Shown: in pieces, positions 15,749-57,081 of the stretch
Numbering within the stretch: the first letter of the stretch is position 1
Layout: each line of letters starts with the position of its first letter
NCBI GenBank assembly: GCA_965240325.2
Contig: OZ251236.1
Location: 744,001-808,000 of the forward strand
DNA: 64,000 nucleotides
From: Rebecca billardiae RCC1528
Taxonomy: Eukaryota > Protista > Haptophyta
Reading direction: 5' to 3'
Notes under the pieces: generated by a model
What the model saw: the letters and a program-made list of their open reading frames with translations, nothing else
Database searches by the model: none
Told to the model about the DNA's origin: nothing
Program-made: the position numbers and the translations under genes

Positions 15749-15912
15749 TGTGCGCCGGTGCTGGCGACGACGAATCAGGAGACCTGCGCCGTCCTATTGT
15801 ACCTGTGTCGTTATGGGGGTAAATCATAGAATGAGTGTGCATCACGGCCGGAGCATCAGGGCTTGAGGCGAGGATGGAGGTCGCGAACTGCGACGAGTAG
15901 ATCGCGGGCAGC

Positions 15913-18347: not shown

Positions 18348-18465
18348 TCTGCTGCTACTCTACTTCATTCTATGATTTAACGACACAGGGCCATATCATC
18401 TGCAGTCATCTGGAGCATTAAATTGCACTTAGCAGTCGTATGTATCCCCTCCGCGGACTATAAAT

Positions 18466-18604
18466 AAATTCCCCTTTATAACGGGCTCCGGGTGATCAGG
18501 CTGGCCTGATCACGGCCGCCAGCCCATGTACCCCGAGCAGTGCACTGGGACAAGCAGTGCACTGGCCTTGCAATTCGAGATCATCGAGTGTGAGCCGAGT
18601 CGGC
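18466..18604 (-). mobile_element. Rearranged, internally deleted copy B of the retroelement 3' end
   Basis: aaattcccctttataacgggctccgggtgatcaggctggc is followed by inverted pieces (cctgatcac, ggccgccagcc) and then an internal segment ccttgcaattcgagatcatcgagtgtgagccgagtcggc that matches ~15246-15283. Confidence 0.8.
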
Positions 18605-36600: not shown

Positions 36601-36786
36601 GTGGGGAGCACGGCGCTGCGCCCGGCGTCGTCGTCGCCCTCGCCCTCAGCCGTGCGTGCGACGGTGCTGGTGCGCGTCGGCCGGCCACCAATCCGCGGCA
36701 CGCTCGCGGTGCAGCCCGCCGCGGGCGTGGCCCTCAGCACCCCGTTCGCTCTGCGCGCGGCCGGCTGGGCGGCGGACCCGTCCTCC

Positions 36787-36818
<32 letters not shown>

Positions 36819-39800
36819 CGCGGAGGAGGCAAGCCTGCTCCCTCTGAGCTACGCGTTCGGCCACGCCGAGCGATCGCCTGGAGGCGTGGGCGCCGCGCCC
36901 GCCGTCGCCACTGCCGACGGGCAGCGGCAGGAGTCCCTTGGACCGGCTGGCGCGTCCGCCGCGCTGCTCGGCGTCGTGCTGCCGCCGGGCAACCGGACCG
37001 TGGTCGTGCGAGTCACCGACTCCCTCGGCGCGCACGCGAGCGCGAGCGCGGATGTCGAGGTGCGGCGAGCGTCGGCGGCCGACGCGGCGCTCGTCGCGGC
37101 GCTGAGCGCGGCGCGAGACGCGGCGGCGGCGGGCGCGGCGGGCGCGGCGCTTCGGCTCGTCCGGGCGCTCGCCGATTCGCTCGCGCCGACGACGCCGCCC
37201 AACGCCTCTGCCGCCGGCTCGACGCCGGCCGTCGCGCAGCTGCTGGAGATCACAGAGGCGATCACGGCGTCCGGCGCAGCGGACGTCTCGGCCGAGGCGC
37301 GCGCACACGCGGCGAGCACACTTGCAGCCGTGCTCGAGTCACCCGGCGCGGCCGAGCTGCCGGGCGCCGCGCGCGCGAGCGCGCTTCGCCAGGTGGCGAG
37401 TCTCGCGCTCGGCTCGGCGGAGAGTGGCCTCGAGCGCTCGACCGCGCTCGCGCTCGTCCGCTCCATCGACCGCGCCACCACCGCCACGCCCGCTGACGAC
37501 GGCGGCGCTGGGGCGGACGACGGGCCTGCGGAGGCGGAGGCAGGCGCGCAGGCGCTCGCGGCCGTGAGCGCGCTCGGGGCGGCCATGCTGGTTGGCGCTG
37601 CGATCGGCGAGCCCGCCTTCACGCTCGGCGGCGCGGCTGTGAACATCTCCGCCGCGCGCTTCGACCCGCTGGCGCTGCGCAACGCAACGGTACAGAACGC
37701 GGGCGGCGCGGGCTCGGTGTACGTCCCCGCCGCCGCGCTCGGCGCGCTCGAGGGCGGCGCGGCCGCGCTCTCGACAGGCGTCGACGTTGTGCTCTGGGCG
37801 CTCTCGCGCTCGCCGTACGTGGGCGCCGGCCTCGCGTCGGCGTCGGCGACGGCGCCGGGGGCCGAGCCGGCGGCGCCGAACGGCACGGCGGCGGTGGCGG
37901 CCGTGCGCACAGCGACGTTCTCTGTGGCGCTCTTCCCGCCGCGAGCCGCGGCGGGCGCGCTCGTCGAGCCCATAGCCGTGACGGGCGTCGAGCCACCGCT
38001 GCTCCTCGCGCTGCCCCCGGGCGGCGGCGGCGGTGGGAGCGGCGCGGACGGCGCGGGGGCGGGCGGCGGCGGCGGCGGCGCTCCGCTGTGTCACTTCTGG
38101 GACGAGGCGCTGCGCGCGTGGAGTGACGAGGGCTGCGTGACGGTGATGGGCGGGTCGACTTCCGCCGCGCTCGGCGAGGGCGGAGGCGCCGACGCGTCGG
38201 GCGCTGCGCTGCTGTGCGCGTGCTCGCACCTCACGGACTTCGCCGGGATTGTCGTGCCGGCGTCTGCGGACGAGGCGTCCGAGCAGGCCTCCGCCGTCGG
38301 CGTCAACACGTTCAGCACGCAGGACACGGCGGACGCGCTCTCTGCCGCGCCGGTGCGAACGTCGGAGTTTGGGGACAGCGGCGCGCCCACGATGCGCGCC
38401 ATCATCATCGCCCTCTCCGCCGCGAACGTGCTCGCGCTCGCACTCGCGCACGCGGCGGACGTGCGCTCGGCGAGGCGGCACCGCGCGTGGCGCGCCGCGG
38501 AGCTGCAGCGCCTCAGCAGCGGCGCGGGCGCGGACGGCTCGCGCAGGGGCAGTGCGGATGCGTCCGCGCGCGCCTCGGCCGCGCGGCAGGCCGCGGTCGC
38601 GCGCCAGTCTGTGCGCCGCCGCGGCTCGCTCTCCTCGTTCTCGGCGACGTCGGGCGGGTCCTACCACTGCAGCGGCGGCGGGGCGGGCGGCGGCGCGGAC
38701 GGCTTGACGACCGTGCAGCGCGTGCGCGCCAAGAAGCAAGAGGCGGCTGAGGCCGCGGCGGCTGAGGCCGCGGCGGCTGAGTCCGCGGCCGAGCGTGGCC
38801 TCCCAGCCGAGTGCGGAGGGAGTGACGGCCTCGGCTTGGCGCCGCCGACGCCGTGCTCGGCCGCTCTGGCGTACGAGCCGGGCCATTGCGACCTGAACCT
38901 CGCCACCATGGAGGGCATGACGACCGTGCAGCGCGTCCGAGCGCGCAAGCAAGCGGAGGCCGCGTATGCCGCCGCGGCCGCGTCCGCCGCGTCGGCCGCC
39001 GCGAGCGGCGGCACGCTGATGCCGCCGTCGGCGCCGCTGAGCCCTCCGCCGCCGTCGCCGCCACCGGCGCCGCCACCGCCACCGCCGCCGGGCGCGCCCG
39101 CCGGAGCGGCCGACCGCGTCCTCCCCGTCCGCCGCTCCCCGGCCAGCCTTGGCGAGCGCAGCGCCGCGCTCGGCGAGGGCGTGCGCGCTGTGGAGGAGGA
39201 GGAGGAGGAGGAGGACGATCAGAGCGACGCGGGCTATAGCTCCTTCTCGTTCCGCGCGCGCGTGCTCGCCACGGGCGCCTTCGAGGCCATCCGGGAGCAG
39301 CACGTCCTGACCTCCGCGCTCTCGCAGCCAGACCCGTCGGCCAGGCGCACCGAGGCGGTGCAGTCGCTGTTCTGCATGCTCGCTCTCGAGGTGTGCCTCG
39401 AAGCTTTGCTGTACGGCCAGCCAGGCGCGTCGCTCGGCCGCTCAGACCTCTCCAGGGCCGCCGAGTCCGGCGACGATTACCACAGCGACGACCAGGCCGT
39501 GGGCCTACTCACAATACTCCTCACCGCGCTGCTCGTCTCCGCCGTCTGCGGCCCGGCGCTCGGGCTGTTCAGAGTCGTGTGGCGGTACGGCCGCGGACCG
39601 GACCGGCCCGCGCCGACGGAGGTGCTGTACACCGTTCTCAAGCGCACACTGAGCAGCTCGAGCCGCTCGGCCTCGACGCTTGCGTCGCGCGTCACCTCGC
39701 GCAAGTCGTCCGTGCTCTCCGATAGCGTGCTGAGCAGCGCCGCGCTGCGCTTGGCCGTGCGCGGGCGCGCGGACTCGAGCGGCGGGCGCGCCGCCGACGC

Positions 39801-41985
39801 GGACGGCGCCGGCGCGGGCGCCAGCTCTCGCGTGCAGCCGGTGCGCTCGGTCGGCGGCGGCGCGTCCGCCGCGGCGGACCGGCCGGCCCTCAGCCGGCCG
39901 CGCAGCGCGGGCTCGAGAGGCGCGGGCATCGTCATTCCGCCCACGCCATCCACGCCGCACGGCACGGGCGCGCTGCACGCGCCGGCGCGCGAAGGGCTCG
40001 CGGCCAAGGCGTGCGCGCCCGCCGCCGCCGAGGCCGACGCGCGGCGCGGCGCGGTGAACGACGCGCTGGAAGGCTCGGCCGCGGCCGTCTTTGCCCGGCC
40101 CTCGTCGGCGAGCCTGCCCTCGTCCTCGCGGGCGTCGGCCGCGCGCCCCAGGTCCGCCGCACACCCGCTCTCCCGAGCTTCCACCGCCTCCCTGGCGGAG
40201 CGACCGTCGGCATCGGCGGGTCCGCCGCGCCGACCCGTCTCGGCTCGGCCGTGCACGTCGCCCGCCTCGACGGCCGGCTGGTCGTCCACGCTGCCGCTGT
40301 GCTCCACCGAGTCCTCGAGCCTCGCGTCGCGCTCGGCCACGCCCGAGGACTCGCTCGACGCGGCCGGCGCCGCGCACGCCGCTGCGCCCGCCGGCTCGGC
40401 GCCAGCGCCCGCCTCTGACGAGGCTGTGCCCGGGGGCGCCATCGACGGCGCGCCCGCCGCGCTCGATGGCGGGGCGCCCGCAGCCGCCGACGGTCGGCGC
40501 TCTCGCCCGCTCGCACCGCCGAGCCCCCCCAGGGGCCGGGTGCACTACGCGCCCGCGGCCAAGGTGCTGGGCGCGCGCGCGCGCACGCTCGCGCCCGCCA
40601 CGCCGCACGCCAGCCCGCTGCGCTCCGCACTCCGCCCGGCGGCGCTCGGCGTGATCGCGTCGCCGCCAGCAAGTCCCGCGCGCTCGGCGCTGCGCAAGCC
40701 CGGGGCGCTCGGCGGCGCGGCGCCGGGCTCGCCTGCGACCTCGAGCCGCTCGGTGCAGCTCCACGCGCCGGCGGAGGGCGCGCCTGCCATCACGCCTGTC
40801 GTCGTCGTCACGCCACCGGCCAGCCCGGCGCAGCCGCCACGCGAGTCGTCCGCTACCGCCTCCTCCTCCGCGCTGGCGCAGGCGGCGGCGGCGGAGGCGC
40901 CGTGTCTGTTTGAGGGATTCACAGACTCGGAGCTGGCAACCATCAGGCAGGTGGTCTCGGACGAAGAGGCGGTGGCGATGCGCTGGGCGTTCAATCGGCA
41001 CGCGCGGGCGCGCGTGCGCACCGTTGGGTTTGTCGCGCGGCTGCTCTCACCCGCCGGACGCCTCAGCCGACTGAGCCGCCTGTCGGGCGCCGACAGCCTG
41101 GGCGGCTCGCGCGGCGGGACGCCGAGCCGGCCGAGCCGCGTCGGCGGGCGGCTCACGGGCAGCGAGTCGGCCGGCTCGCGCGCCACCTCGCCGACGCCGA
41201 GCAACCGGTTCAGCTCGCCGGCGCCCGCCGACCGCTCCTACTCCTATGGCTCGCCGACGGCCGGAAATCGCTTCGCCGCCGCGTGCGCCAACTCGGCCGC
41301 GCCCGGCGGCAACCGGTTCAACTCGCCGGCGCGCTCGGCCTCGGGCGGGAGCGGCCGCTTCAGCGCGCGCGCGGCGCCGAGCCCCACGCGCTCCGCGCCC
41401 ATCGCGCCCGCGGGACTGCGCGGCCCCGCGCGTGGCTCGGCCGCGCCGTCGCGCAGCTTTGGCGGCGCGCGCCGGCTGCGGCCAGACGGGCTGCGCGCGC
41501 TGATGGCCGAGCACGCCGAGCCCGTGACGCCGCGCGTCTCGCGGCTGCTCGTGCGCCAGCTGGACTCGGATCTCGATGGTGCCGTCGCGCTGCGCGAGCT
41601 GCTCGCGTGGTACGCGCGGCAGAAGCAAGCGGCGCAGCTGCGCGCGCGGCTAGGCTGCGCGCTGCTCGCGCGCTGCGCGCCGCCGCCGCGCGTGCGCGCG
41701 CCGCTCGCGTGGCTGCTGATGCTGAGCACCTACGTCGGCCTCTGCATCTTCGCGCTCACGCTCGGCCAGGCGCTCGGCCAGGCGCGCGTAGACGCGATGC
41801 TCCGCTCGTGGCTCATCGCGCTCACGCACACCCTCGCGGTGCAGGAGCCCATCATGCTCGGCGCCGGCCACGTCGCGCGCGCTGGCGGCAAGGCGTGCGC
41901 CGGCCTGCTCGCGCTCGGAGCGGGCGAGGCGATCATGAGCGCGCTGGACGCGGTCGAGGGCGCGATGCGCTTCTTCTTCCAGTAG
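21655..41985 (+). CDS. Giant polycystin-1/REJ-GPS-like adhesion receptor (LRR, SPPP stalk, IPT, REJ, GPS, 5 TM, EF-hand). Exons 21655-22076, 22269-22340, 22523-22594, 22764-41985, ~6595 aa
   Basis: Three phase-2 GT-AG introns splice LRR units in frame (total 19788 nt). Plant-type LRRs; IPT motifs (PRAGPVDGGTVVTVEGAGF); REJ motifs (LTIDASASGDPN, PPIRGTLAVQPAAGVALSTPF); GPS CHFWD...WSDEGC...CACSHLTDFA; PKD1-like TM motifs (SWLIALTHTLAVQEP); EF loop DSDLDGAVALRE. Start codon uncertain. Confidence 0.9.
24271..32733 (+). repeat. ~8.5-kb (SPPP/SPPPP)n coding array, ~2820 aa, with ~1-kb higher-order repeats
   Basis: The PPSSPPRPPPSPP marker lies at ~25447, 26431, 27406 and 27991; the PPLRPPS marker at 28311 and 29310 (999 nt apart). 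Confidence 0.97.
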
Positions 41986-43107: not shown

Positions 43108-45615
43108 TCAGATATGCCAGCTCTCCGCCGCGAGCGCCTCTCGGATGGCGGCTCGCGTGCGCGCGTTGAACGCCTCGATGCCGTCGTCGTCGCCGCGCTC
43201 GGCGCCCGCGCCGCGCGGGTCGGCCGCCGACCCGCCCCTGCGGCGCGAGCGGTGGCGCGGCGAGCCGTACCGCGCGCGCACCTCGTGCAGGATCACGTCC
43301 CGGTCCGCGTCGCGCGGCACGCCCGCCGTGCGCACGTCGTACTGCCCGAGCTGGTCGAGCACGCGCGGCCGGTTCGCGGCGAGTGCCGAGATGAGCCGCG
43401 CGCGCTCGGCGGGCGCGATCGCGACCGAGAGCCCCGCGGGGCCGAGCGGCCCGCCGCCGTCGACGGTGCGCAGCAGCGGCAGGTCGAGCGCGTGCATCAG
43501 CTCCCACAGGCACCACGCGCGCGTGAGCGCCACGGGCTTGTCCCAGGGGTCGAGGACGAGGACGACCCGCCCGACCCGGCGCTCGAGCGCGCCCAGATAG
43601 ATCAGGTCGGCCTCCTGCGCAAACTGGCGGAGGCAGACGAGGTCGAGCCAGTAGAAGATGGAGGAGGTGTCGAGGTCGTGCAGCGCCGCGTGCGCGTGCA
43701 GCGCCTCGACCATCTTGCGGAAGTCGCACGCGTGCGCGTGCGAGACGAAGTGCGTCGCGAGCCCGACCGCCTGCGCGCCCGACTCGCTCAGCGTGCCGAC
43801 GTGCTGCTCGGCAAGCGAGCTGCGCAGCCGCTGCCGGAAGAGGTGCTCCCAGAGGCGCTCGGAGACCTCGTACGCGGTCTCGCCCGGCCGGACGCGGAGC
43901 ATGCGGCACAGGTCGTCGAGGAAGTCCGGGCTCACGCCGAGCAGCAGGTGCGGCGGCAGCGGGCCCATCGCGAGCCGGCGCAGCTGCCACGGAATCGGAA
44001 GCCGCAACGGCCGCTCCCAGATCGAGGGCAGTACCCGCTTCGAGCCCGGCCGCGCCTCCGCGCCCGCCGCGGCGCAGCCAGCGCACGGGTGGCTGAGCCC
44101 GAGCGCGCGGAGCAGCGCGCGCGCACACACGCCGAGCAGCGCGTGCAGCGGGCCCGGCGCGGACGCGCGCTCGCCGCCGGCGCGCAGCGTCGCGCCCGGC
44201 GGCGCGCGCAGCGCCGCGCAGTGAGCGTAGGATCGGCAGTTGAGAGCGCTCAGCATGCACAGCCCGCCGCCTAGCCGGCCGCGCGGGCGGAGGGCCCACC
44301 ACGGCGCGCTGAGCGCGCACGCGAGGGCGAGCGCGCCGCTCGCCAGCGCGACGCGCAGGTGCGCGCGCACGCGCGAGAGCACCGGCCCCGCGATCGCGCG
44401 GTGCCGGCGCGCGCGCTGCACGCCCGCGGTCGCGCGCGCGCTGAACGCGAGCGCGGCGCTCGGCAGCACTACCCAGCTCAGGCCGAGCCTGCCGAGCTGC
44501 GCGCGCGCGCCGGGCGCGGCGGTGGCCGAGGCGAGGGCGGCGGAGAGCTCGAACGCGACCGCCGCGCCGCTCGCGCCGAGCACGCCACGCCGCGCGCGGA
44601 GCGAGAGCGCGAGGGACGGGAGGCCGCCGGCGGCGGCCGCGTCGAAAAAGGCGACGGCGAAGGTGCATGCAGCGACCGCGCCGCAGCCCGCCGGCATGGC
44701 GACGAGCGTGAGCGCGAGCGGCGACGGGAGGAGCGGCTGCGCGCCGCCGCCGTCGAGGAGCGCGTGCAGCAGCCGCTCCACGCACACCACGCCCTCCAGC
44801 GCCAGCGTGAGCCCGGGCGCGCCCAGCACCCAGGCCCAGCGCACAGACCACGGAGCGGCCGCGCCGCCGCCGGCGGCCCCGTGCGCGGCCGGCGCGGCCG
44901 CCGCCGCCTGATGGCTCATCGCGGCGCGTTGGAAGGCGAGGATGCGCGAGACGAGCAGCTCGAGCGTGAGCAGCGCCTGCAGCGCGACGAGCACGCGCGC
45001 GCACATCCACGCGCCACCGTCCCACGCCGCTGCCCACGCGCCGCCCACTCTCGCGGGCGCGAGCGCGGCGCGCACAGCCGCGCGGCTGCGGGCCAGCGCG
45101 TCGAGCAGGGGCGCGGCGTCGGCGGCGAAGAGGTCGACGGCGGGCGCGCGCGGGCGCAGAGAGCGCGCGTCGCCGCGCTCCCACGCGCGCGTCTGCCCGC
45201 CCGGCACGGGCTGCAGCGCGCGCGCGAGCGCCGCGCCGCCCGTTGGCACGTGCGCCCAGCCGGCCGCGCCGTGCGCCTCGATGGCGGCGCGCGCGAGCTG
45301 CTCGGCAGAGCACGCGCCGCGGGCGGGCGGCTCGGCGATGACAATGGCGCGTGCCAGCACGCGCGCGTCCGCGCCCACGTACCGCGGCGGGCACCCCGCC
45401 GACGCGTCCCAATCGGCGGCGGGGGCCCAGACGATTGGCGCGGCCGCCACGCGCTCCGCGCCCGCCGCAAACGCGTAGCTCGGCGCGGCGAGCCGCAGGC
45501 CGACGAGCTCGGCCGGGCCGGCGATGATGGTCAGCTCAGCGCGTACCAGACCGGCAGCGGCCGCGGCGAAGACGAGCGCCTCGCGGCGCGCCCGCCGCCC
45601 GCCGCGGACGCGCAT
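43108..45615 (-). CDS. Signal peptide, PA-like ectodomain, 7TM, C-terminal HET/TIR-like domain; ~835 aa
   Basis: Single ORF, ATG at 45615. Seven hydrophobic segments at ~45009-44210. C-terminal motifs ATHFVSHAH, FYWLDLVCLRQ and LVLDPWDKPVALTRAWCLWEL. Confidence 0.85.
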   Translation of the reverse strand: MRVRGGRRARREALVFAAAAAGLVRAELTIIAGPAELVGLRLAAPSYAFAAGAERVAAAPIVWAPAADWDASAGCPPRYVGADARVLARAIVIAEPPARGACSAEQLARAAIEAHGAAGWAHVPTGGAALARALQPVPGGQTRAWERGDARSLRPRAPAVDLFAADAAPLLDALARSRAAVRAALAPARVGGAWAAAWDGGAWMCARVLVALQALLTLELLVSRILAFQRAAMSHQAAAAAPAAHGAAGGGAAAPWSVRWAWVLGAPGLTLALEGVVCVERLLHALLDGGGAQPLLPSPLALTLVAMPAGCGAVAACTFAVAFFDAAAAGGLPSLALSLRARRGVLGASGAAVAFELSAALASATAAPGARAQLGRLGLSWVVLPSAALAFSARATAGVQRARRHRAIAGPVLSRVRAHLRVALASGALALACALSAPWWALRPRGRLGGGLCMLSALNCRSYAHCAALRAPPGATLRAGGERASAPGPLHALLGVCARALLRALGLSHPCAGCAAAGAEARPGSKRVLPSIWERPLRLPIPWQLRRLAMGPLPPHLLLGVSPDFLDDLCRMLRVRPGETAYEVSERLWEHLFRQRLRSSLAEQHVGTLSESGAQAVGLATHFVSHAHACDFRKMVEALHAHAALHDLDTSSIFYWLDLVCLRQFAQEADLIYLGALERRVGRVVLVLDPWDKPVALTRAWCLWELMHALDLPLLRTVDGGGPLGPAGLSVAIAPAERARLISALAANRPRVLDQLGQYDVRTAGVPRDADRDVILHEVRARYGSPRHRSRRRGGSAADPRGAGAERGDDDGIEAFNARTRAAIREALAAESWHI

Positions 45616-46671
45616 CGGACAGCCGCCCCCTCCGCTCCAAGTCGGGTCGCTCGGAGCGAGAGAAGCGTGGCGTGGTGTTTCGGGCCGGCGGCTCGCGAGA
45701 TACAATCACCAACCACGGCTTAGGGATTCTGTCATAGCGATCCGGCGTCAGGCGGTTCATTGATCAGAGAGTGGTTTACCCACGTATGTCCTTGTACCCT
45801 TGGCCGGGCCGCCCTGCGCCACCCAGCCGCCTTGACCACCTCTCGACGCGCGTCGCCACCCAGCCGCGCATCGTCGCGGCGTGCGCCTCCATCGCCCTAT
45901 CCCCGACGCACCTCAGCAGTCGGCGTATCCGCCCGATCCGGACATCTTCAGGGCGCGGAGCGGGATCTGCGCGACGAGCCACCACCAGCGCCTCGAGCGT
46001 GGCAGCGCGTCAGCCCCCGTCATTACGTGTCCCCCCAGCATCATCACGCTCAACTTGTGCCCGTGCGCGCCTGACTGCGCGCAGCCAACGCCCGCGGGTC
46101 CATATCACTCGCGCGCGAGTGCGTCACGGGATCGATGCGCAGGTCGCGCATCTCGCGCTCGACGGACGCGACGATCGCTCGGAGCGCCGCGCCGTCCACG
46201 CGGCTGTTGAAGTGTGCTCGTCGAGCAGGTTCCTCGGCCAGAGTAACGAGCTTGATTGAACAAGCGGCTGTGAGCGCATGTGCCGACGAGCAATGTCGGA
46301 CGCATTCGGATCTCGCGAGCTATCAAACGATGACTAGTGTCCGTATCACCGCACGGTATGCGCATGTCTATCGCGTTTCGTTGGGCACACCTCAGTCCTG
46401 CGATCATCATTCGTCAGTTGTCAGTATTCTCAACCTTAAGCACACTCGAGTCTCGACAGCCTGAAACTGCGCGCGCGCGCCGATCCATGTGCACAGGCAC
46501 CAGCTTGGTCGGCGTGAGGCGGCCTGGCGCGGGACAGCCATATGCGGATCTTCATCCCGGACTGAATCGCCACGGGCGAGCGCCAGACTCGGCCCCGGTG
46601 CCGACTGTTCCGCGCACCACACGCACGTGCTCGAGGCGGGGGCGCGGCCACGGCTACTGTACGGTACTGGC

Positions 46672-46780
46672 CAGGGATGGGCGGATTCGCCGAATGGCCT
46701 CAGCGCGCGAATTCGCCGAATTCGCCGAATTCGCGGAAATTCGCCGAATAATATATGGCGAATTTCCGGGAATCGAATTT
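46672..46780. mobile_element. hAT-like terminus remnant with (GA)ATTCGCC subterminal repeats
   Basis: Begins CAGGGATGGG (the Ac TIR begins CAGGGATG), followed by ~6 ATTCGC(C/G) motifs, one inverted. No convincing partner end or TSD. Confidence 0.4.
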
Positions 46781-47708
46781 GTTTGCGCCATGTATCACCC
46801 CAACAAGAGGCTACGAGTGTCAGTATGACGTGTGGCACAGCCCGTATACTACCAGGGACCATGCCCAATCTGTGGCGCCTCTGTGCAGCCTAGCTCTGGG
46901 ACGCGTGCGGCTTGGGTCAGACTTGCGCGCCTCACCGGTGTGGACTGTGACGCGTGACTCGGGCTGACCGACGGACCTCAGCCGCCAGCTCCTCGGTCTT
47001 CGCTAAGTTTGCGGCGTTTCTCACTGCATGCGTGCCATGAAGCAATGTGCTGGAGTCTGCCGCGCCCCCCGGCGAACACCAGCCTCGCCGACCCCACCAC
47101 CAATGCCGGCGCGCAGCTGTCCGTCGACCTTGATTCTGACGCTGCTCGGCACGCCGGGAGTGTGCACGCAACGCCCGCGCCAGAAGTCGTCTCGCCGCTC
47201 GCCTGAGGCCTCGTCAGAGTGCACGTCGGTGCCCTCGTAGTGGGCATGCGCTACGTTACCCTGAGCGTCACCGACGCGTGCAAGGCCGAGCTGCTCGCAG
47301 CCGCCTAGTTCAACGCAGCCGCCGGCGCCGAGCGGGGACGCGCCCTCTCCGCGCTGGACGGCTGGCTGCTGCCGCCACTGCGGAGGCATGCAAGCGCCGA
47401 GCGCATCATATTCTGCAGCCCGCTTGGCGAGTTCGCGTCGTACGCCGCTCGCCTCGGCGCGGCGGGCGCGCACGCGGCGGCGCGCAGGTCGCATGCGCCG
47501 ATCGGCGGCCGTCGGCCGTCGCGCCGGCCGGGAAGATACTGAGTCCGGCAAGGGCAATACCGACCGGATCGGGGCATCGCCCAGCGTTCGCGAATTCACA
47601 TCAATTCGGGCGTGCCGCGCCCTGCAGCGCGATCTCCCTGTTGATCTCGAAACGGGGGTCTCGAATGATCGAATCTCGATCGATGAATCAGAATTCTTAA
47701 CCAAAACC

Positions 47709-47835
47709 TTTTTAAATTCCCCTTTATAACGGGCTCCGGGTGATCAGACTGGCGGCCGAAGCCTCCAGCCCTACCCTGGCCAGCCCCCAACCAACCACCA
47801 CCCTCACCCAACCTCGAACCACTGACCGATACACC
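47709..47835 (-). mobile_element. Short 3' fragment of the retroelement, copy C (head-to-tail with copy D)
   Basis: TTTTT-aaattcccctttataacgggctcc...actgaccgatacacc, nearly identical to the start of copy D. Confidence 0.85.
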
Positions 47836-48550
47836 TTTTTTTTTTTTAAATTCCCCTTTATAACGGGCTCCGGGTGATCAGGCTGGCGGCCGAAGCCTCC
47901 AGCCCTACCCTGGCCAGCCCCCAACCAACCACCACCCTCACCCAACCTCAAACCACTGACCGAGACACCTAGTGTCTTGACACCACTCCACTGTGGACAG
48001 CCCGCCTCCAGAGGGGGCGGGGGTATGCCATTGCCAACAGCATACGAGCCCAACACTGTGGGGTGGTCCCAGGTACAAGCAGTGTACGGCCTTGCAATTC
48101 AAGATCATCGAGTTTGAGCCGAGTCGGCAGCAGGGGCACCCCCTAGGGTGCCCCAGTGTGCCCGTGTGGGCAGAGGGCCAGCCACTAGCCGATCCCTGCG
48201 CGGGGAAGGGAGCTGAGGGGACTGTCATCGAGCCCAGTAGCTGGGCAGGGGTCTGGGCCACTGGCCCTGGCAGCGAGGCGCCTGTATTTCACTCGTGCAG
48301 CTATGGAGGCAGAGGGGGTCATGTCAGACATGTGTGCTACATCGGGCATCAAGTCCGGGCGTGGGCCGCTGTAGGAAGCAAGCAAAGTGGTGGCGATGGC
48401 TAATACGCCTGGGGAGGTGTCGTTCGCTCGCCTCTTCCTGCTGCGCTGTGCAGGGGGTAGCGTGCTCCGCTGCGGCACATTTGCCTGGCGGGGTGGGCAG
48501 TGTCGTTTGGGCGGGGGGCTGTCCTGCTGCGCTTGACTAGGAGGAGGCAG
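47836..48550 (-). mobile_element. 3' fragment of the non-LTR retroelement with a 12-nt A-tail, copy D
   Basis: T12 at 47836-47847, then ~700 bp co-linear with 14980-15748. A minus frame reads LDDLELQG...CWARMLLAMAYPRPLWRRAVHSGVV, reminiscent of RTE-clade ORF ends. Confidence 0.8.
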
Positions 48551-48718
48551 CCCGCGCCTGAAGACCCGAAAGTTCGAGCGAGGGCCGAAACCATCTAATG
48601 AGCAAGATTATCATTGTCCATGGTTTGTGCGCCTAGATCATCATAGGATTGATTGAGTGATCGAGTATGGGGGTACAGTATTATCTACTCTACTTAATCG
48701 TGTAAAGTGGATCCGCGG

Positions 48719-48898
48719 CACAGATGTCGGGTTAGTTACGAAAATGCCCACAATTCGGAGTTTTCTCTATGAAAAACCATCGGTTCGGCTGTTTTTACTC
48801 GCTAAACCAACGGTTCGACGGATGTTACTCCGAAAAACCATCGGTTCGCCGGGTTTTACTTGACCAAACAATCGTTTCGACGAGTTTTACCCACTGTG
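48719..48898. repeat. Five 30-31-bp AT-rich tandem units bounded by CACAG...CACTGTG ends (MITE-like)
   Basis: Core cggttcg/cgtttcg/caattcg at 48751, 48781, 48811, 48842 and 48873. Ends are CACAGATG (48719) and CACTGTG (48892-48898). Confidence 0.75.
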
Positions 48899-49289
48899 CC
48901 TGCAGTTGGGACAGTCCTCGCACGTAGTGGCCTCGAAAGAAAAGATTCGGAGTACGCTTTTGTCGAGTGATGGCTGCGCGATGTATTATGTTTTCCGCTC
49001 GAGTTGCCGTTCGTCCGAAGGAAAATTCTTCTCGACGAAACATGGAGGGCCAATCAGGGTCCGTCGATCGATTACAGTTTACTATGTTTTAACGTGCACA
49101 CTTGTCGACGCGACTCAAGTTAGGCGGCTCATTTGAACAGCAACCGCCGGATGATACTCGCTCGTCAAGTAGAGGGGCCCGCTCGGGCCAGGCTGACCGC
49201 CGTGACGGGAGGTCGAGATGCCACCGCGGGCGCCGCGGGGCTGCGACCGAGGGTGTGGACCGTCGGGGTGATGTGTGAGCAGGATGCTC

Positions 49290-50024
49290 ACGCCCTGTCG
49301 CCTGCAACTGTCGACGGCCGCCCTCCACCTGCACCTCGCCTGCACCTCGCGACCGTGCGGCCGATGACCGATCTGTAACGCTCGACGATTGATCCGACGG
49401 CTCGACGAGTGATCGAGTGATCCGCACGACGGGCGTCGCCTGCAACTGATAACGGCCGCTCTCATGTCCGGTGCTCAGGAGGCGCACGCTTGACGCGTGT
49501 CCTGCGCGGTTGTCACCTGCCCCGGCGGTTGCAACTCTCTACATCTCTCCTCCGGACGGAGTGGCGCGCCGGTCCGTGTTGCGACGGCGTTGCTCGACTG
49601 GATCTGCGCACCGGGCCTCGCCTGTAACTGTTTTGATGCGTGCCGTGCCCTGCGCGGCTGGCACCTGGCTGCCTGCCCCTGCTGCTGCAACTCTCGGCGG
49701 CGGCGCGCAGATCAGTGTTGCTCGACTGGATCTGCGCACCGGGCGTCGCCTGCAAGTGTTTGCGGCCGTCCACCAGCCCTACAGCCCGAGGCCAGTGGGA
49801 GCACGCGCTTGATGCGTGCCGTGCCCTGCGCGGTTGTCACCTGGCTGCCTGCCCCTGCTGCTGCAACTCTCGACGGCGGTGCGCAGATCAGTGCTGCTCT
49901 ACTGGATCTGCGCCCCGGGCCTCGCCTGCAGCTGTTTATTTACGGCCGTCCACCAGCCTTACACGGTCCGAGGCTCAGTAGACAGTAGGGGCGCGCGCTT
50001 GATGCGTGCCCTGCGCAGTTGTCA
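49290..50024. repeat. Degenerate tandem repeat, 143-190-bp units (3-4 copies plus partials)
   Basis: The ttgaYgcgtg anchor occurs at ~49490, 49633, 49809 and 49999; the actggatctgcgc block occurs three times. Confidence 0.88.
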
Positions 50025-50194
50025 ACGCAGGCTGTAGCGCTGTCCGCACCGCTACCGGTATACGAACCAAGCGAACGTCTGAAGGTGGTCGTGAAGCTGC
50101 CGCTGCCGGCGTGCAGCGGCGGCTGCAACTCACTCTCTAGTCATACATAATGTCATTTGGGCAATAATGGCGTTTGGGATACGACACACACGTG

Positions 50195-50233
50195 TTTTAA
50201 AATTCCCCTTTATAACGAACGGGCTCCGGGTGA
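50195..50233 (-). mobile_element. Extreme 3' stub of the retroelement, copy E
   Basis: tttt-aaaattcccctttataacg(aacg)ggctccgggtga, about 150 bp upstream of the next ATG. Confidence 0.8.
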
Positions 50234-50384
50234 GCACCGTCGCGTTTCCATGATGATACGAACCGCCACAAGACTCCTCATTCATTATGAATCAGGTTCA
50301 GGGACGACTCTACGAGTGAATCATGTGGAATCACGAGTAAAGGTGCAGGGGCGAACCGCGAGATTTATTCTGCCCACGACGACG

Positions 50385-52175
50385 ATGACGAATCCTCCCC
50401 GGCGCGGGTGGGTCCTCGCCCTGGCGGCGTGCGCGCAGCTCGGTGCGCGCGCCGACCTCGTCGTCCTGCGGTCGCCAGACGCCCCTGAGCTCGTCAACTA
50501 CTCCGCGCCGTTCTGCCGCCACTTCTACCCCAACTCGGACCGCACTGACTACAGCTTTGACGCGGACGTCGTCGCGATCAAGACCTCAGACATCGATTGG
50601 ACCGGGTGCAAGCTGCGCTACACGGGCGACGAGGACCTGGAGGGCAAGGTCGCCATCTGGGTCCAGCCCCTCTCGTACAAGTGCGGAACCACGACAATCC
50701 TCAGGTATGGGCGCACGTGGGGCCTCGCCGGCCAGCTGACGTACTACCCGGACGTCATCAACACGGGGCTCCGGCACATCTCCGTCGGCTACTGGCGCAA
50801 CGTGTGGCGCACAAGGGCTCCGCGCGCCGACGACCCCTACGTCGGGCCCAGCGGCGAGTTCACGGCGCGCGCCTCCATCCCGATTGTCGAGGCGCTGCTC
50901 GCCGGCCAGAAGATCAGGGCGCGGATGGCGCGCACGGAGGTGCTGTGGGAGGCGTTTGAGCACGGCGCGCTCTTTGCGCTCTGGCGGGCGTTCATCATCC
51001 TCCTCGCCGCCTTCTGCATCGAGATGGCCGCGACGCGGCTCTACGCCTTCATCAAGCAGGACGGCGGCAAGGTCCACCTCACCGTGCCCAACCTCGTGAT
51101 GATGGGCAGCATCGTCGCCAACACGGTGCGCATCCTGTACATCGGCCTGGGCCCGATCTTCACGACGCCCACGCTCTCGGTGCCGGCGAGCAACGCCATG
51201 ATGGTGCTGTCGGCATCGACGGAGTACTGGACGTCGGCGGTCTTCGTGAGCTACGTCTGGCTCGGCCTCGCCAAGGGCGGCCTCGCTCAGCCCAACCTGC
51301 AGCGCGTCACAGCGCGCACTCTCCTCGCGATCGTGACGTGCGCCTTCGTCGTGGACATTCTGGGTGCGACGATGTACATGTTCGTCTACGGCCTGGTGCG
51401 GGCGCTGCGCGGCGCGGGTGGGCGGTGTGCACGCCGAGCCCGCGTCGGCATCCCACGCGCGCCCTCCCGCGCGCGTGCTCACTCGCCCCCTGCCCCCGCA
51501 CCCCTCGTCGCGCCCTGCGCACCCCGCGCACCCGCACCGAGCAGTATCAGGTGCGTGTGCGGGCGGTTCGCAACGCGGATGGGCGCAGGGCACGCCGGGG
51601 CGCCGAGCGCCATCGTCATCCCGCGCGCGCCCGGCCGCGCGCGCGCGCTCACTCGGCCCCTGCCCTCACGCCGTCGCACCCGCACCTCGCGGCAGGCCAT
51701 GACTGCCAACTCGTGCGTCTTCCCCGGCCTCATTGCGATCTTCTGCATCCGCGCAGACATGAAGCTGCAGAAGCTCGCCGGGCACCTTCCATCCGTGCCG
51801 CTGATGAAGCGCATCCGCTTCAAGCTGCGCGCGTCCATCCTCCTCTCGCTCGCCTTCGTGCCGGTGCCGCCCCTCACGTTCATCCTCATGTTCAACCCGT
51901 ACACGGTGGTCCTCATCTTCACGTACGGCATGTGTGTGCTCACGGCCACGTCGCTCGTGCAGATGACCACGTTCTGGCCGACAGCGACCAAGGTGCCGCG
52001 CGGGCCGCTCCTCTACTGCCTGGAGACGCTGGCTGGTCGCCGCATCTTCACCTCACTCATCGGCCCCAACTCGGCGCTGCCTGTCAACGAGATCGAGCCA
52101 GCCACGGAGGAGCAGAAGGCAGCTGAGGAGGCGTCCCGCGTGCCGGCGCAATTCATCGAGATCACGCGCCTCTGA
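50385..52175 (+). CDS. Signal peptide, PA-like ectodomain, 7TM receptor (paralog of 43108-45615, no HET domain). Exons 50385-51395, probable 51545-51550, 51696-52175; ~498 aa
   Basis: Signal GWVLALAACAQLGARA; PA pattern GC...DLEGKVAI...C...GLAG...IVEALLAGQKIRARM; seven TM segments once the non-coding-looking 51396-51695 (GT...AG) is removed. Confidence 0.87.
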   Translation: MTNPPRRGWVLALAACAQLGARADLVVLRSPDAPELVNYSAPFCRHFYPNSDRTDYSFDADVVAIKTSDIDWTGCKLRYTGDEDLEGKVAIWVQPLSYKCGTTTILRYGRTWGLAGQLTYYPDVINTGLRHISVGYWRNVWRTRAPRADDPYVGPSGEFTARASIPIVEALLAGQKIRARMARTEVLWEAFEHGALFALWRAFIILLAAFCIEMAATRLYAFIKQDGGKVHLTVPNLVMMGSIVANTVRILYIGLGPIFTTPTLSVPASNAMMVLSASTEYWTSAVFVSYVWLGLAKGGLAQPNLQRVTARTLLAIVTCAFVVDILGATMYMFVYGLVRALRGAGGRCARRARVGIPRAPSRARAHSPPAPAPLVAPCAPRAPAPSSIRCVCGRFATRMGAGHAGAPSAIVIPRAPGRARALTRPLPSRRRTRTSRQAMTANSCVFPGLIAIFCIRADMKLQKLAGHLPSVPLMKRIRFKLRASILLSLAFVPVPPLTFILMFNPYTVVLIFTYGMCVLTATSLVQMTTFWPTATKVPRGPLLYCLETLAGRRIFTSLIGPNSALPVNEIEPATEEQKAAEEASRVPAQFIEITRL

Positions 52176-52556
52176 ACGTCGTCCGAAAGGATGATGATCT
52201 GATGAGTTACATGGGTGCCATGCGCAGCAGATCTACGCGATGACCTGCACTCTGCAGCTGCCAGTGGACCGCACCACAGCGCAGCTGCACAACTATCAGC
52301 CATCACCGGGCCGTCAGGCTGAATCACTATAGTCATCGTGCCAACTACCGTACTCAATTATATATATATAACAGTTTGACACGACCACGTGACAGACGTG
52401 ACTCACGAGTCACGTCATCAGCGCAGCGCAGTACGGACGACATCAGATATGTCTCACTCACACACGTCATCGTCAGCAAAAATCTGCAATAGAGAAGAGA
52501 GTCATCGAGACGATGCTGAGAGAGATCGAGACGAGAGCAGACGACGAGTAGAGTAT

Positions 52557-52569
52557 AGAGAGAGAGAGC

Positions 52570-52600
<31 letters not shown>

Positions 52601-52630
52601 CAGTGAGAGAGAGACTGAGAGAGACGAGAG

Positions 52631-52661
<31 letters not shown>

Positions 52662-52670
52662 CGAGTAGAG
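52557..52670. repeat. Interrupted (GA)n microsatellite
   Basis: Seen directly. Confidence 0.95.
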
Positions 52671-52922
52671 AATGCGTCCGCGCCTCACTCCTCAGTCGCC
52701 TGCGACCATGGGCATGGCCATGCTGAGACTGAGTCCATGTCAGGGCAGCCTGCGCCACTCGGACCGCCAGTCTAGCCCCGTGGCCCGTGCCCCCCGCTAC
52801 GCCTACGGGCACGGCGGAGCGGGGCCGTGGGATGGAGCACCACCTCCGGGCCTTTATTGGCACGCGGCGGCGACGGCAGATGCCGCCACGGCCGAGCAGC
52901 GCGTTCCGGAGCACTTGGGTGA

Positions 52923-53182
52923 GGGTGAGGTCGTAGTCGATGTCGCCGCCCGCCGACCTAGTGGCCCCGAGCGGCGAGCAGCTGCGGGAGGCGACAGCCG
53001 CGGCTGTCGCTCCTGGGCGTCCGCGTGGGCGCCCGGATGAGGATGAGGTCGTAGTGCGCGTCGCCGCGCGCCGCCCTAGCGCCGCGCAGCTGCATAAAAG
53101 GGGCTTGGAGAGTGAGCGCGCCGCCTAGTGCGCTCTGGGCGATGAAGCGGATGAGGTTGTAGTCGACGTCGCAGCCCGGCCC
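52923..53182 (-). repeat. Three degenerate ~33-bp motifs (108-118-bp spacing); possible decayed repeat-protein fragment
   Basis: ggRtgaggtYgtagt...gtcgc at ~52923, 53041 and 53149. The minus strand translates as GDIDYDLTL, GDAHYDLIL and CDVDYNLIR. Confidence 0.55.
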
Positions 53183-53868
53183 GCCGGCGGGCTGCTGTAG
53201 TAGATGACGTAGATATATTAGTAGCCGCGTCGGCGGGCCGCTCGAGCCTCAGAGCGAATAGTATGGGGGTAGTGAGTCGCTGAGTCAATCGAGCGGTGCG
53301 TCACGGCGGCGTGGCGCGGCGCTTCTAGACGGTGCTCGAACTGATGCCGTGGCGGGGCTCGTGCTGCTGATGGCTGGCGTGCACGCCAAGCGAGCTGGCA
53401 CAGTCCCGCGCGGCTTCATGATAGCCTCGCGCGCCGCAGCGCACCGCGCGCCTTCCCCGGCTACGCCCTTCTCTCGCCTCGGCCGCCGTGCACGCTTGCG
53501 CCGCCAAACCGCAGCCTCGGCGCACCTCTCAGCGGTCTCATAAGCGGAGCGTGCACGTGCCTAGTGTGCGACGCGAAGAGGACATTGCCGCCGGGCGATG
53601 TAGCCATCATGTGAGCGCGCGCCACGGCACCGCCGTGGAACTAGTTGGCTTGCAGACTGACCACCCTTCGGCGCACCGGCAGGCCTGGAGGCCCTTCTGG
53701 CGAGCGCGCGCGCGACAAGGCGGCCAGCAAGGACGTCGGTCGCCGCATCGTGATCGGCGCATTGTGCATGCGCCCTGACGGCCGACGACGAGACCCAACT
53801 CACTCACGACCATCCCGACCAAACAGTGCCACTGTCACTCTGCTTGGAGGCACCAACACTCAGCAGCC

Positions 53869-56800
53869 ATGGCGGCGGCGTCGACGCACTTCACGTTTGG
53901 CTTTTTCGACGGGGACCCAGGCCGCACCGCCGGGCTCTCGTCGGGCGACGGCGCGCAGCCTGCCGCCCAGCCGGCGCTAGCGCAGCTCTTCACGCCCGCC
54001 GCCGCTGCCCCGCGCGCGGGCGCCGCCGCGGAGGACGGCGGCGTCGAGGTGGCGCCTGGCCGCGCCGCCGTGCGCCCGCCACCCGAGCGCTTGCTCGCCC
54101 ACGTGCGCGCCGAGCACGCGCGCGTGCGCGTGGTCGACGATGCGCGTGGCGGCGTGCGCCTCGTCGCCGCGTGCCGCGTGCGCAAGGGCGACGTGCTCGC
54201 CGAGGCCAGCCCGGTCCTGTGCATTCGGACGCTCGAGGACACCGAGCGCGGCGCCGCTGTCGTCTGCTCGCGCTGCTGCGCGCACATCGGCGGCGCCGCG
54301 GAGCAGCTGGGCGCGCAGCTGGGCGCGTGGACGCGCGAGGCGGCGCTCGCGCCCGAGGCGCTCGCCGAGCCCCTGCCGAGCGTGGGCGGCGCGCCAACCG
54401 CCTCCGCGGAGGGCGCGCGGGCGGTGCGGTGCGCGAGAGGGTGCCGTCAGCTCTACTGCGGGACCGTGTGCGCGCGCGCGGACTGGCGCGGCGGGCACGC
54501 GCTGCTGTGCACGGGCGGCGAGCTGAGCGCGGCGCACCCGCTGCGCGAGCACGCGCGGCACGCGCGGCGCACCTCCGAGACCTTCCTCCTCGGCGCGCGC
54601 TGCTTTGCGGCCGCGCTCGCGCGGCGCGCGCCGGGCGCGCTCGGCGCTGCTGCGGCCGACGCCGACGCCGACGAGGCCGGCGCCGAGGCGGAGGACGAGG
54701 CGGAGGGCGAGGCGCTCGAGGACGAGCTCGCGCTCATCGAGGCGTGCCTCGGCCTGCCCGAGCCCGCCGCGCTCTCGCGCGACTCGCACGAGCCGCCGCT
54801 GCCGCTGCCGTGGTGGGCTGTGCGCGCGCGCGCGCACGCGGGCGCGGCCGAGGCGCGCGCCGCGCGCGCCGAGGCGCATTTCCGCGAGCAGGCGGCGGAC
54901 AGCTTCGAGCTGCTGAGCGCCGGGGTGTCGCTGCGCGCGCGCGAGCTCGGGCTCGCGCCGCCGCGCGCGTGGGCCGCGCTCCTTGAGCCCGAGCGCGGGC
55001 TGCGCTGGTATGGAGGTGCGCTGGCCGCGCTCGAGCGCTGCGTGGTGCCGATGGAGGCCGAGCCCCCGGACCTTTTGCACCTCGCCCGGACTCTGGGCCA
55101 CGCGCGCCCGCGGACGGCGCTGCCGGCGGCGGAGGCGTCCGAGCCAGCTGGCGGCGCCGGCATCCCGGGCGGCGGCCGCGCAGACGACGACCGCCGGAGC
55201 GGCGGCCACCACCAATCGACGGGCGCGTGGCTCGCGGCGGTGCGTCGGCTGCGCCCGTTGCTGGACCGCGCGCTGCCCGCGCCGCCGCGGCCGCCGGGCG
55301 CGGCCGCGCACGGCGCGGAGGGCGGCGTGTCGGCGGACGCGACGCGTGGAGCGGTGCTCGCCGACGCCGAGGCCGCCCGCGGCGGCGCGGAGGCGCAGGA
55401 GGCCGCCCGGCCGCCCAAGCGCGCGCGCCCCTCCGGCGCCACCGCAGCAGCCATGTCTCCCCCGGCCGCGGCGCGCGGCACCGCGGCTGCGGCTGCGGCG
55501 CACACCGCCGCCGCAGGCGAGACCACCGCCGCCATGCGCATCGCTGAGCTCGTCGAGGCGGAGCGCGACGCGGCGCTGCTCGCAGCGCTCGCGAGCAGCG
55601 CGCCAGCCGAGCTCGTCGCCCCGGCGCGCGCGCTTGCGCTCCTGCCCCTGGCGTGTGCGCTACCGCACTCATGCGCGCCCTGCGCGCATCTCGAGGCAAT
55701 CTCGGCGCATCTCGAGGCGATCTCGGCGCCGCTGCCGCCGATTAGGGCGCCGACTGCCGCCGCCGCCCCTGCCGCCGTGCCGGCGGACGGTGCTCCGGCA
55801 CCGGCGCCGCTCGCCCGCACGGCGGGCCGGCTCGGCCGCGCGCGGGGCGTGCGCGCGCGCCTGGTCGCACTGCAGGACCTTTTGCCTGGGCAGGAGCTCA
55901 CAGTGGCCAAGGTCTCGGCTGCCGAGGCGGAGGCGGCGCGGCGCGCCGCACTGCGCGAGCGGGACCCGGGCGCGCCGTGCTGCGCGTGCGCACGCTGCGC
56001 CTTCGAGCGCGCCGGCGCGCTGCCCGCGGGCGCGGCGCGGCCCGCCGACGACGCGGACGGCGGGGTGTGCTCTGCCGCGGCCGCGACGGCGCGCGACCTC
56101 GCGCGCGCCGCGCTCGCCGACGGCCGCTTCGACGACGCCGAGGCGTGCATGGCAGCATGGCTGGCTCTCGAGCCTCAGAACGGCGACGCCCACTACGCGC
56201 TCGGCGCGCAGCGCGTCGCGGCGGGGCGGTGGCGCGCCGCGCGCGCCGCGTGGCGCGACGGGCTGCGCGCGGCGCCGGCGCACCCGAACCTCCGCGCCGC
56301 CGCCGAGCGCGACCGCCTTTACCTGGCACCGCCAGAGGAGCCAGCCCCCTCCGAGCCGCGCGGCGGGCCGGCGCCGACGGCCGTGGCGTGCACGCGCCTC
56401 TGGCCGGACGCGACGCCTGTCAGCAGCAGCCTCGCGCGCGCGCACGGCCGCGCGGCTGCGCCGCGCCGTCGGCCCGGCGCTCTCAGCTCGCGCGAGCCAG
56501 CCGTCGCCGCCGAGGCCGAGGCCGGCTCGGTGGGCGGCGGCCGCGTGCTCCTGACGGCGGAGCCCGTCGCCTCCGCCGCCGAGTGCGGCTGGCTGATTGC
56601 GCAGGCGGAGGCGGCCGCGGCCGCGGCGGGCGGCTGGACGACCGCGCGCCACTACGCCGTGCCTACCACCGACCTGCCGCTGCACACGCTGCGAGAGCCG
56701 TGCGGCTGGTTCGCGCGCCGCTGCCGCGACACTCTCTTTCCCCTCCTCGCCGCACACTTTGGCGTGCGCGCGTCCGACATGCGCGTGCACGACGCGTTCG

Positions 56801-57081
56801 TCGTCAAGTACACCGCGGCCGCGCAGCGGCTGCTCCCGCTGCACACGGACGAGGCGCAGATCTCGCTCACGCTCGCGCTCAACCCGAGCCGCGAGTACGA
56901 CGGCGGCGGCACCTACTTTGCGCACGCGCGCGCCGCGCTCGCGCCCGAGCTCGGGCACGCGCTGCTCTTCGACTCGGCGCTGCTCCACGGCGGCGACCCG
57001 GTCGTGCGCGGCGTGCGCTACATCATCGCCGCCTTCCTCTGCGTCGATGACGATGACGGCGAGGGCGCGCGTGCACGATGA
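53869..57081 (+). CDS. SMYD-like split SET/MYND domain, TPR-like helices, Fe(II)/2OG oxygenase (PLOD/P4Hc-like); 1070 aa
   Basis: CSRC...CARGCRQLYCGTVC...HALLC zinc finger; PHSC; DLLPGQELTV; post-SET CACARC; LALEPQNGDAHYALG; DAFVVKY...LPLHTD...YDGGGTYF...HGG...GVRYI with the HxD...H...R residues intact. Confidence 0.88.
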   Translation: MAAASTHFTFGFFDGDPGRTAGLSSGDGAQPAAQPALAQLFTPAAAAPRAGAAAEDGGVEVAPGRAAVRPPPERLLAHVRAEHARVRVVDDARGGVRLVAACRVRKGDVLAEASPVLCIRTLEDTERGAAVVCSRCCAHIGGAAEQLGAQLGAWTREAALAPEALAEPLPSVGGAPTASAEGARAVRCARGCRQLYCGTVCARADWRGGHALLCTGGELSAAHPLREHARHARRTSETFLLGARCFAAALARRAPGALGAAAADADADEAGAEAEDEAEGEALEDELALIEACLGLPEPAALSRDSHEPPLPLPWWAVRARAHAGAAEARAARAEAHFREQAADSFELLSAGVSLRARELGLAPPRAWAALLEPERGLRWYGGALAALERCVVPMEAEPPDLLHLARTLGHARPRTALPAAEASEPAGGAGIPGGGRADDDRRSGGHHQSTGAWLAAVRRLRPLLDRALPAPPRPPGAAAHGAEGGVSADATRGAVLADAEAARGGAEAQEAARPPKRARPSGATAAAMSPPAAARGTAAAAAAHTAAAGETTAAMRIAELVEAERDAALLAALASSAPAELVAPARALALLPLACALPHSCAPCAHLEAISAHLEAISAPLPPIRAPTAAAAPAAVPADGAPAPAPLARTAGRLGRARGVRARLVALQDLLPGQELTVAKVSAAEAEAARRAALRERDPGAPCCACARCAFERAGALPAGAARPADDADGGVCSAAAATARDLARAALADGRFDDAEACMAAWLALEPQNGDAHYALGAQRVAAGRWRAARAAWRDGLRAAPAHPNLRAAAERDRLYLAPPEEPAPSEPRGGPAPTAVACTRLWPDATPVSSSLARAHGRAAAPRRRPGALSSREPAVAAEAEAGSVGGGRVLLTAEPVASAAECGWLIAQAEAAAAAAGGWTTARHYAVPTTDLPLHTLREPCGWFARRCRDTLFPLLAAHFGVRASDMRVHDAFVVKYTAAAQRLLPLHTDEAQISLTLALNPSREYDGGGTYFAHARAALAPELGHALLFDSALLHGGDPVVRGVRYIIAAFLCVDDDDGEGARAR

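Follow-up and report, generated by a model that had tools for sequence, protein, structure and literature searches.

We analysed a 64,000-nucleotide window of Rebecca billardiae RCC1528 (contig OZ251236.1, positions 744,001 to 808,000), in which two divergent genes, here called L (left; 43108..45615, minus strand) and R (right; 50385-52175, plus strand), were confirmed as members of one protein family with a signal peptide, a predicted PA domain and a seven-transmembrane (7TM) core with a G protein-coupled receptor (GPCR) fold. Probably, the two genes diverged long ago within an expanded pavlovophyte family of PA-7TM receptors and are adjacent by history, with no partner-specific function. A sequence-only reading of the same DNA had placed their start codons at 45615 (minus) and 50385 (plus), 4.77 kb apart; both starts were confirmed, and the two ATGs lie 4,770 bp apart with L and R as immediate neighbours. 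Pairing of L and R is neither supported nor excluded; apart from their arrangement, nothing speaks positively for it.

The direct alignment of L and R is weak but real. BLASTP of L against exon 1 of R gave a weak match (E 0.002, 21% identity), and the Smith-Waterman score of 90 compares with 40.5 +/- 6.0 for shuffled sequences, none of 2000 shuffles scoring as high. A profile built without either gene scored L at 220 bits, R exon 1 at 167 bits and R exon 3 at 50 bits. The paralogy seen in the sequence-only reading is thereby borne out by pairwise and by profile alignment, and all four of the motif pairs that it had matched by eye fall into matching columns of the family alignment. The Pfam scan matched neither L nor R; the PA model (PF02225) gave weak matches in three of the 21 family rows (best E 0.005), and L and R are not among these.

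An exhaustive search with the C-terminal 315 residues of L returned 1,769 proteins. About 20 of the best 150 matches have the full N-terminal half, and these fit R and L far better than L fits R. Word-based searches for homologues returned nothing for R exon 1 or for the family alignment, and only distant TPR/ankyrin proteins for the L tail, negatives which are limited by the method since the exhaustive search recovered the family. Queries with R were either individual exons or the natural unspliced open frame.

The named family members are hypothetical proteins of the pavlovophyte haptophyte Diacronema lutheri, one of which is labelled as RGS-domain-containing. L and two relatives, P0018 and P0059, occur on contigs of the same runs (ERR14847148 and ERR14847151), and the three are therefore probably paralogues of one genome. 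Orthologous family members of about 1,070 amino acids were seen with the same upstream neighbours in two species (locus L007, 10001-13210; locus L012, 3757-6978), one of them named RGS-domain-containing, and P0059 groups with these two (support 100/98). Local duplication was also observed in D. lutheri, where the family member KFE25_004345 has the 317-residue KFE25_004352 (locus L002, 18047-19000) 4.6 kb downstream. The two fall into the same 90% cluster, and KFE25_004352, which resembles the final part of the tail profile, is a putative local partial duplication.

L consists of one exon, a single open frame of 835 codons on the minus strand from the ATG at 45615, which was recognised by its open reading frame (ORF), its family profile match and its coding-like G+C content at third codon positions (GC3, 0.95). 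Logan contigs from two runs, ERR14847148 and ERR14847151, carry the same protein. L was also seen in a second form, from another allele or strain (locus L001, 261-2768), with four base differences in 3.2 kb and a Gln-to-His change at residue 229.

The PA and 7TM part of L (residues 12-523; 44046..45582, minus strand) is defined by its profile match, its composition and the family-conserved columns that it keeps, which number 46 of 63. Alanine makes up 29% of this part, and the membrane module of L has the highest alanine content among the 21 family rows. The signal peptide, both PA cysteines and the ectodomain motif PG..W..GD.R are retained, and seven hydrophobic segments align with the family, the seventh transmembrane segment (TM7) being weak. 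As L keeps its ectodomain motifs, it could work alone and would need no separate sensor.

The tail of L (approximately residues 544-835; 43110..43986, minus strand) was delimited by alignment, a structure model and structural matches. It keeps the motifs FVSH, WLD and RAWCLWE, the last of which includes the putative catalytic Glu705 (43501-43503, minus strand), placed by alignment in a column conserved in at least 90% of the tail alignment rows. The model of the tail has a predicted local distance difference test (pLDDT) value of 87.6. Its best structural match is the TIR domain of SARM1, at a moderate score (Z 6.0, root mean square deviation 3.2 A over 114 residues), and TIR domains make up nine of the top 11 structural matches (Z 5.2-6.0); in Foldseek the TIR rows were weak only. 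The Pfam TIR models (PF01582/PF13676) had no match in L and one among 38 homologues (E 0.047), and the HET model (PF06985) likewise had none in L and weak matches in five of the 38 (best E 0.0038). Modelling and alignment show the tail in a predicted TIR fold with a conserved Glu, as a putative enzyme.

R encodes about 497 amino acids after splicing and was identified by family profile, alignment and structure model. Exon 1 (50385..51395, plus strand; 337 codons) carries the signal peptide, the PA domain and TM1-TM4, as supported by the leave-out profile, the model and fold matches; the last exon (51696..52175, plus strand) carries TM5-TM7, an RGPL motif, a helix-8-like segment and a short cytosolic end, as supported by the leave-out profile and alignment. 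The two exons have coding-like GC3 values of 0.93 and 0.90. Between them lies a 300-nt intron region (51396..51695, plus strand), which the sequence-only reading did not mention. It was recognised by its splice sites, by the similarity of its introns and as an insertion relative to the family, and its candidate splicing is either two GT-AG introns (149 and 145 nt) on either side of a 6-nt microexon (51545-51550) or a single intron of 300 nt. The two candidate introns were observed to be alike over about 135 nt, the enclosed segment TATCAG would read Tyr-Gln, and the whole region (51396-51695) is in frame and without stops. Read through, it gives an insertion of about 100 residues which is missing in all 20 other rows of the family alignment, so that the splice model is supported by homology. 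No intron position was seen that R shares with a tailed subfamily, as two fragments that cover TM4-TM5 are continuous without a break.

The model of the unspliced R frame has a mean pLDDT of 73 and leaves the intron part unstructured. It has an N-terminal domain rich in beta structure, together with seven long helices, and its fold matches, consistent down the list, are PA domains (ZNRF3, RNF43, VSR1) and GPCRs, none with E <0.001.

As far as its sequence can show, R is tail-less. By alignment, its stop precedes the point where the tail of its relatives begins. The tail profile had no match in the spacer between the genes, in R, or in any frame from R to the following gene at 53869 (highest score 1.5 bits), and a profile search found no tail-like sequence elsewhere in the 64-kb window besides L. 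The earlier claim of a HET/TIR-like domain on the left gene only is upheld, with the motifs and TIR fold in L and no tail match in or near R. A hidden tail exon or tail remnant near R was ruled out, as the tail profile was without match downstream. It is very unlikely that R is a decaying copy, or is mis-modelled with a tail in exons further downstream: R has the longest branch of the family tree and no close relative of it was found, but its open frame, canonical splice sites, GC3 of 0.90-0.93 and seven modelled helices speak against decay, and against a missed tail stands the lack of any tail-like match, both in all frames as far as the next gene and in the rest of the window.

R is nevertheless the most divergent of the set by conserved positions, retaining 36 of the 63 family-conserved columns, the lowest number of the 21 rows, and the ectodomain motif PG..W..GD.R is mostly lost, so that it probably has a different ligand. 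This bears on another reading, in which R acts broadly as a decoy or dominant-negative co-receptor, damping many tail-bearing members with no special tie to L, in the way that IL-1R2 serves as a decoy for IL-1R1. R ends just before the tail start of its relatives, and the proteins that match it best carry the tail and do not include L, both of which fit such a role, but a decoy would be expected to share the ligand site of the receptors with which it competes, and R has the fewest conserved columns of all; we regard a general decoy as quite unlikely. Locus searches of metagenome, viral and prokaryotic contigs gave no relatives of R and one short tail contig only. The ESM Atlas clusters nearest to R exon 1 (score 0.84) were observed to hold unnamed eukaryotic proteins of 461-607 amino acids from Endomyxa and Zoopagomycota, with PA present in 10% of the members of the nearest cluster, a lead which hints at tail-less PA-7TM proteins outside haptophytes.

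Within the family, L and R are not close. For trees and identities, gappy columns were dropped, including the intron-derived columns of the R row. L-R identity is 20.1%, the lowest of the 20 comparisons of L and 17th among the 20 of R, whereas cross-species homologues within the family share 38-59%. In bits, R exon 1 scores 83 against P0018 and L scores 113 against P0059, compared with 5.8 for L against R. An L+R clade appears in 0% of bootstrap trees, the tree being star-like with long end branches. Of the rare residues of R, L shares 27 against 21 expected, and six other rows are equal or higher; L thus appears to share no excess of the rare residues of R, and by sequence the two do not seem special to each other. 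Of the simple old local duplication that the sequence-only reading had offered as a plainer account, a recent version is excluded by the 20% identity against 38-59% for cross-species homologues. A very old one is compatible with the data, since the star-like tree and the approximately unbiased (AU) test leave room for a duplication that dates back to the radiation of the family.

The arrangement does not recur in the loci at hand. Eight other tail-bearing loci were surveyed with flanks of 1-10 kb: three D. lutheri loci with 10 kb on each side, two loci from the runs that contain L with 2.4 and 3.8 kb upstream, and three loci from run SRR30664515 with 1-3 kb upstream. A profile that detects R easily found a second PA-7TM gene in the flanks of none of the eight. 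At five of them a divergent ORF of another kind was called 53-436 bp away, so divergent neighbours are common here. A conserved partner upstream of other family genes was ruled out because the upstream neighbours are unrelated mutually and to R, the only exception being the two syntenic orthologous loci; micro-synteny is visible between species of this group. Orthologues of L or R with gene context were not found in the homologue and contig searches.

These results bear most directly on a dedicated pair, the proposal of the sequence-only reading in its stronger form. Here R would be a sensor or repressor and L the executor, the spacer would act as a common promoter, and the two would form a 7TM heteromer in which a ligand on R releases or triggers the tail of L. 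The anatomy and arrangement behind the proposed sensor/executor or receptor/decoy pair do stand: L and R are immediate divergent neighbours with no gene between them, their architectures are complementary with the catalytic motif intact in L, and the alanine-richest module in L together with the longest branch of R could reflect specialisation. The proposal falters on the absence of pairing at the other eight tailed loci, the lack of an orthologue pair or of special L-R kinship, the complete ectodomain of L itself and the large size of the family. The repeat-interrupted spacer of 4.77 kb also contrasts with the 53-436 bp that separate ordinary divergent neighbours at other loci. A dedicated pair is rather unlikely on this balance.

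Several points weigh against adjacency by history and, in part, favour a dedicated pair. The survey of eight loci is small, reaches 10 kb upstream at three of them only, and drew all its loci via the tail. If 12-20 thousand genes are assumed, with 20-50 tailed and 5-50 tail-less family members among them, one or more tailed/tail-less neighbour pairs would arise with a probability of 1-34%, and 0.003-0.125 divergent pairs of this kind would be expected, a low figure under these assumed family sizes. Chance adjacency is low, yet not negligible, and scanning every family in a genome meets such cases. The AU test keeps L+R sisterhood (p 0.485). Moreover, the sensors and executors of plant pairs sit in separate subclades (PMC13725568), so the missing L+R sisterhood is no refutation of pairing.

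The spacer itself (45616..50384; 4,769 bp) contains no recognisable gene. Its ORFs of at least 100 codons have GC3 values of 0.55-0.73, none of six spacer ORFs scanned against Pfam gave a match, and an Rfam scan of the spacer gave none either. A gene within it was ruled out by the low GC3 of all ORFs and the lack of any family, tail or Pfam match. The sequence-only reading had described it as full of transposon debris; multi-copy repeats are indeed present, but no named transposon class can be assigned to them. The segment 47709..48558, as judged by internal similarity, the tandem unit and read depth, is a multi-copy repeat that is dispersed and includes a local duplication of 134 bp. It is 85% identical to 14975-15756, with further pieces near 18465 and 18547 (18465-18604) and at 50195-50236, the last of these about 150 bp upstream of the ATG of R. 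In one low-coverage public run, the summed depth over 47709-48558 was 28-46 against about 3 for single-copy pieces, or approximately tenfold; this run looks like DNA, and no RNA run containing the locus turned up. Copies of the dispersed repeat were seen to open with a run of T and a common 23-nt word, and the repeat may be the 3' end of a retroelement. Tandem units of 134, 31 and 176 bp occur in the spacer, the 176-bp unit as a tandem duplication at 49589..50024 which, from the tandem unit search and read depth, is probably also multi-copy. A 9-nt tandem unit, CGAATTCGC, and beside it a 22-nt near-perfect inverted repeat occur at 46708-46773.

On our preferred reading, that L and R are old family members adjacent by history, the adjacency would go back to a local duplication, old and inverted, or to a rearrangement at a later time. 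L would be a self-contained receptor. Ligand binding to its PA domain would cluster or rearrange the 7TM core and so switch on the tail, which by analogy with SARM1 and plant TIRs is probably an NAD+-cleaving or nucleotide-signal-making enzyme. R, less firmly, may respond to another ligand and signal without a fused effector, for instance via a G protein or another cytosolic partner. The RGS-labelled D. lutheri member is a lead that points to G-protein signalling.

Other features of the neighbourhood were noted. The gene following R (53869-57081; 1,070 amino acids) has MYND, TPR and 2OG-Fe(II) oxygenase matches, genes for an aminotransferase and a myotubularin also lie on the R side, and downstream of R a (GA)n tract (52518-52671) precedes three diverged copies of a 59-nt unit (52917-53201). 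On the other side, a 6,466-codon open frame (22585-41985) lies tail to tail with L and contains leucine-rich repeat (LRR)-like segments, a stalk of Pro and Ser that is very long, and a membrane part at the C-terminus.

The receptor family of L and R is apparently undescribed. A targeted search of the literature found no description of the PA-7TM-TIR/HET-like design, the nearest being a membrane TIR protein of Emiliania huxleyi. In this family a TIR-like enzyme domain is attached directly to a GPCR-fold core with a putative ligand-binding PA domain, and the design is a candidate haptophyte sensor of viruses, grazers or neighbours. The locus also reveals tail-less family members, and R offers a natural control or regulator for work on L. 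If true, a functional L/R pair would extend paired-receptor immunity to 7TM proteins; it would mean, improbable as we hold this to be, that the logic of paired NLRs arose independently in an algal cell-surface receptor family, with a tail-less 7TM protein controlling the TIR-like enzyme of its neighbour.

Among haptophytes, the available text on E. huxleyi reports TIR genes that are induced in virus-resistant cells, and one TIR protein with an extracellular region and an intracellular TIR with the conserved Glu (10.1101/2025.04.29.650402). These genes are defined by Pfam TIR models, and PA, GPCR, HET or gene pairing are not mentioned in that text (10.1101/2025.04.29.650402). Plant paired NLRs (RPS4/RRS1, CSA1/CHS3; PMC13725568) resemble the locus in being adjacent divergent paralogues, one with a TIR fold and catalytic Glu and the other lacking that function. 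L and R differ from them in lacking NB-ARC and LRR, in being membrane 7TM proteins, in that R is without the whole TIR-like domain, and in that no recurring pairs were seen in their family. In its layout the locus resembles a paired NLR, yet it does not belong to that class, as neither NB-ARC nor LRR is present.

Toll-like and IL-1 receptors combine an ectodomain, a membrane span and a cytosolic TIR fold in one protein, as L does, and have tail-less paralogues in the TIR-less decoys IL-1R2 and RP105. They are built from LRR or Ig modules and one helix, whereas L has a PA ectodomain and seven helices, and the L tail, which has no Pfam TIR match, is closer to an unnamed HET-like branch. The predicted ectodomain fold of R is like that of ZNRF3/RNF43 and the plant vacuolar sorting receptor VSR1 (Foldseek template modelling score 0.5-0.6 by target, E 0.03-0.06), but these are single-pass proteins with RING or EGF modules and have neither 7TM core nor TIR-like tail. 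Similarly, the seven-helix bundle of the R model resembles class T (TAS2R) and class A GPCRs (template modelling score about 0.5-0.63 by target, E at least 0.013), from which R differs in its 8-14% identity and the lack of a Pfam 7TM match, with G-protein coupling only hypothetical. Finally, although L itself has no Pfam match and the NADase activity of its tail is putative, that tail is like the fungal HET domain (PF06985) and SARM1-type TIR NADases in its TIR-like fold and in its FVSH and WC-x-x-E motifs.

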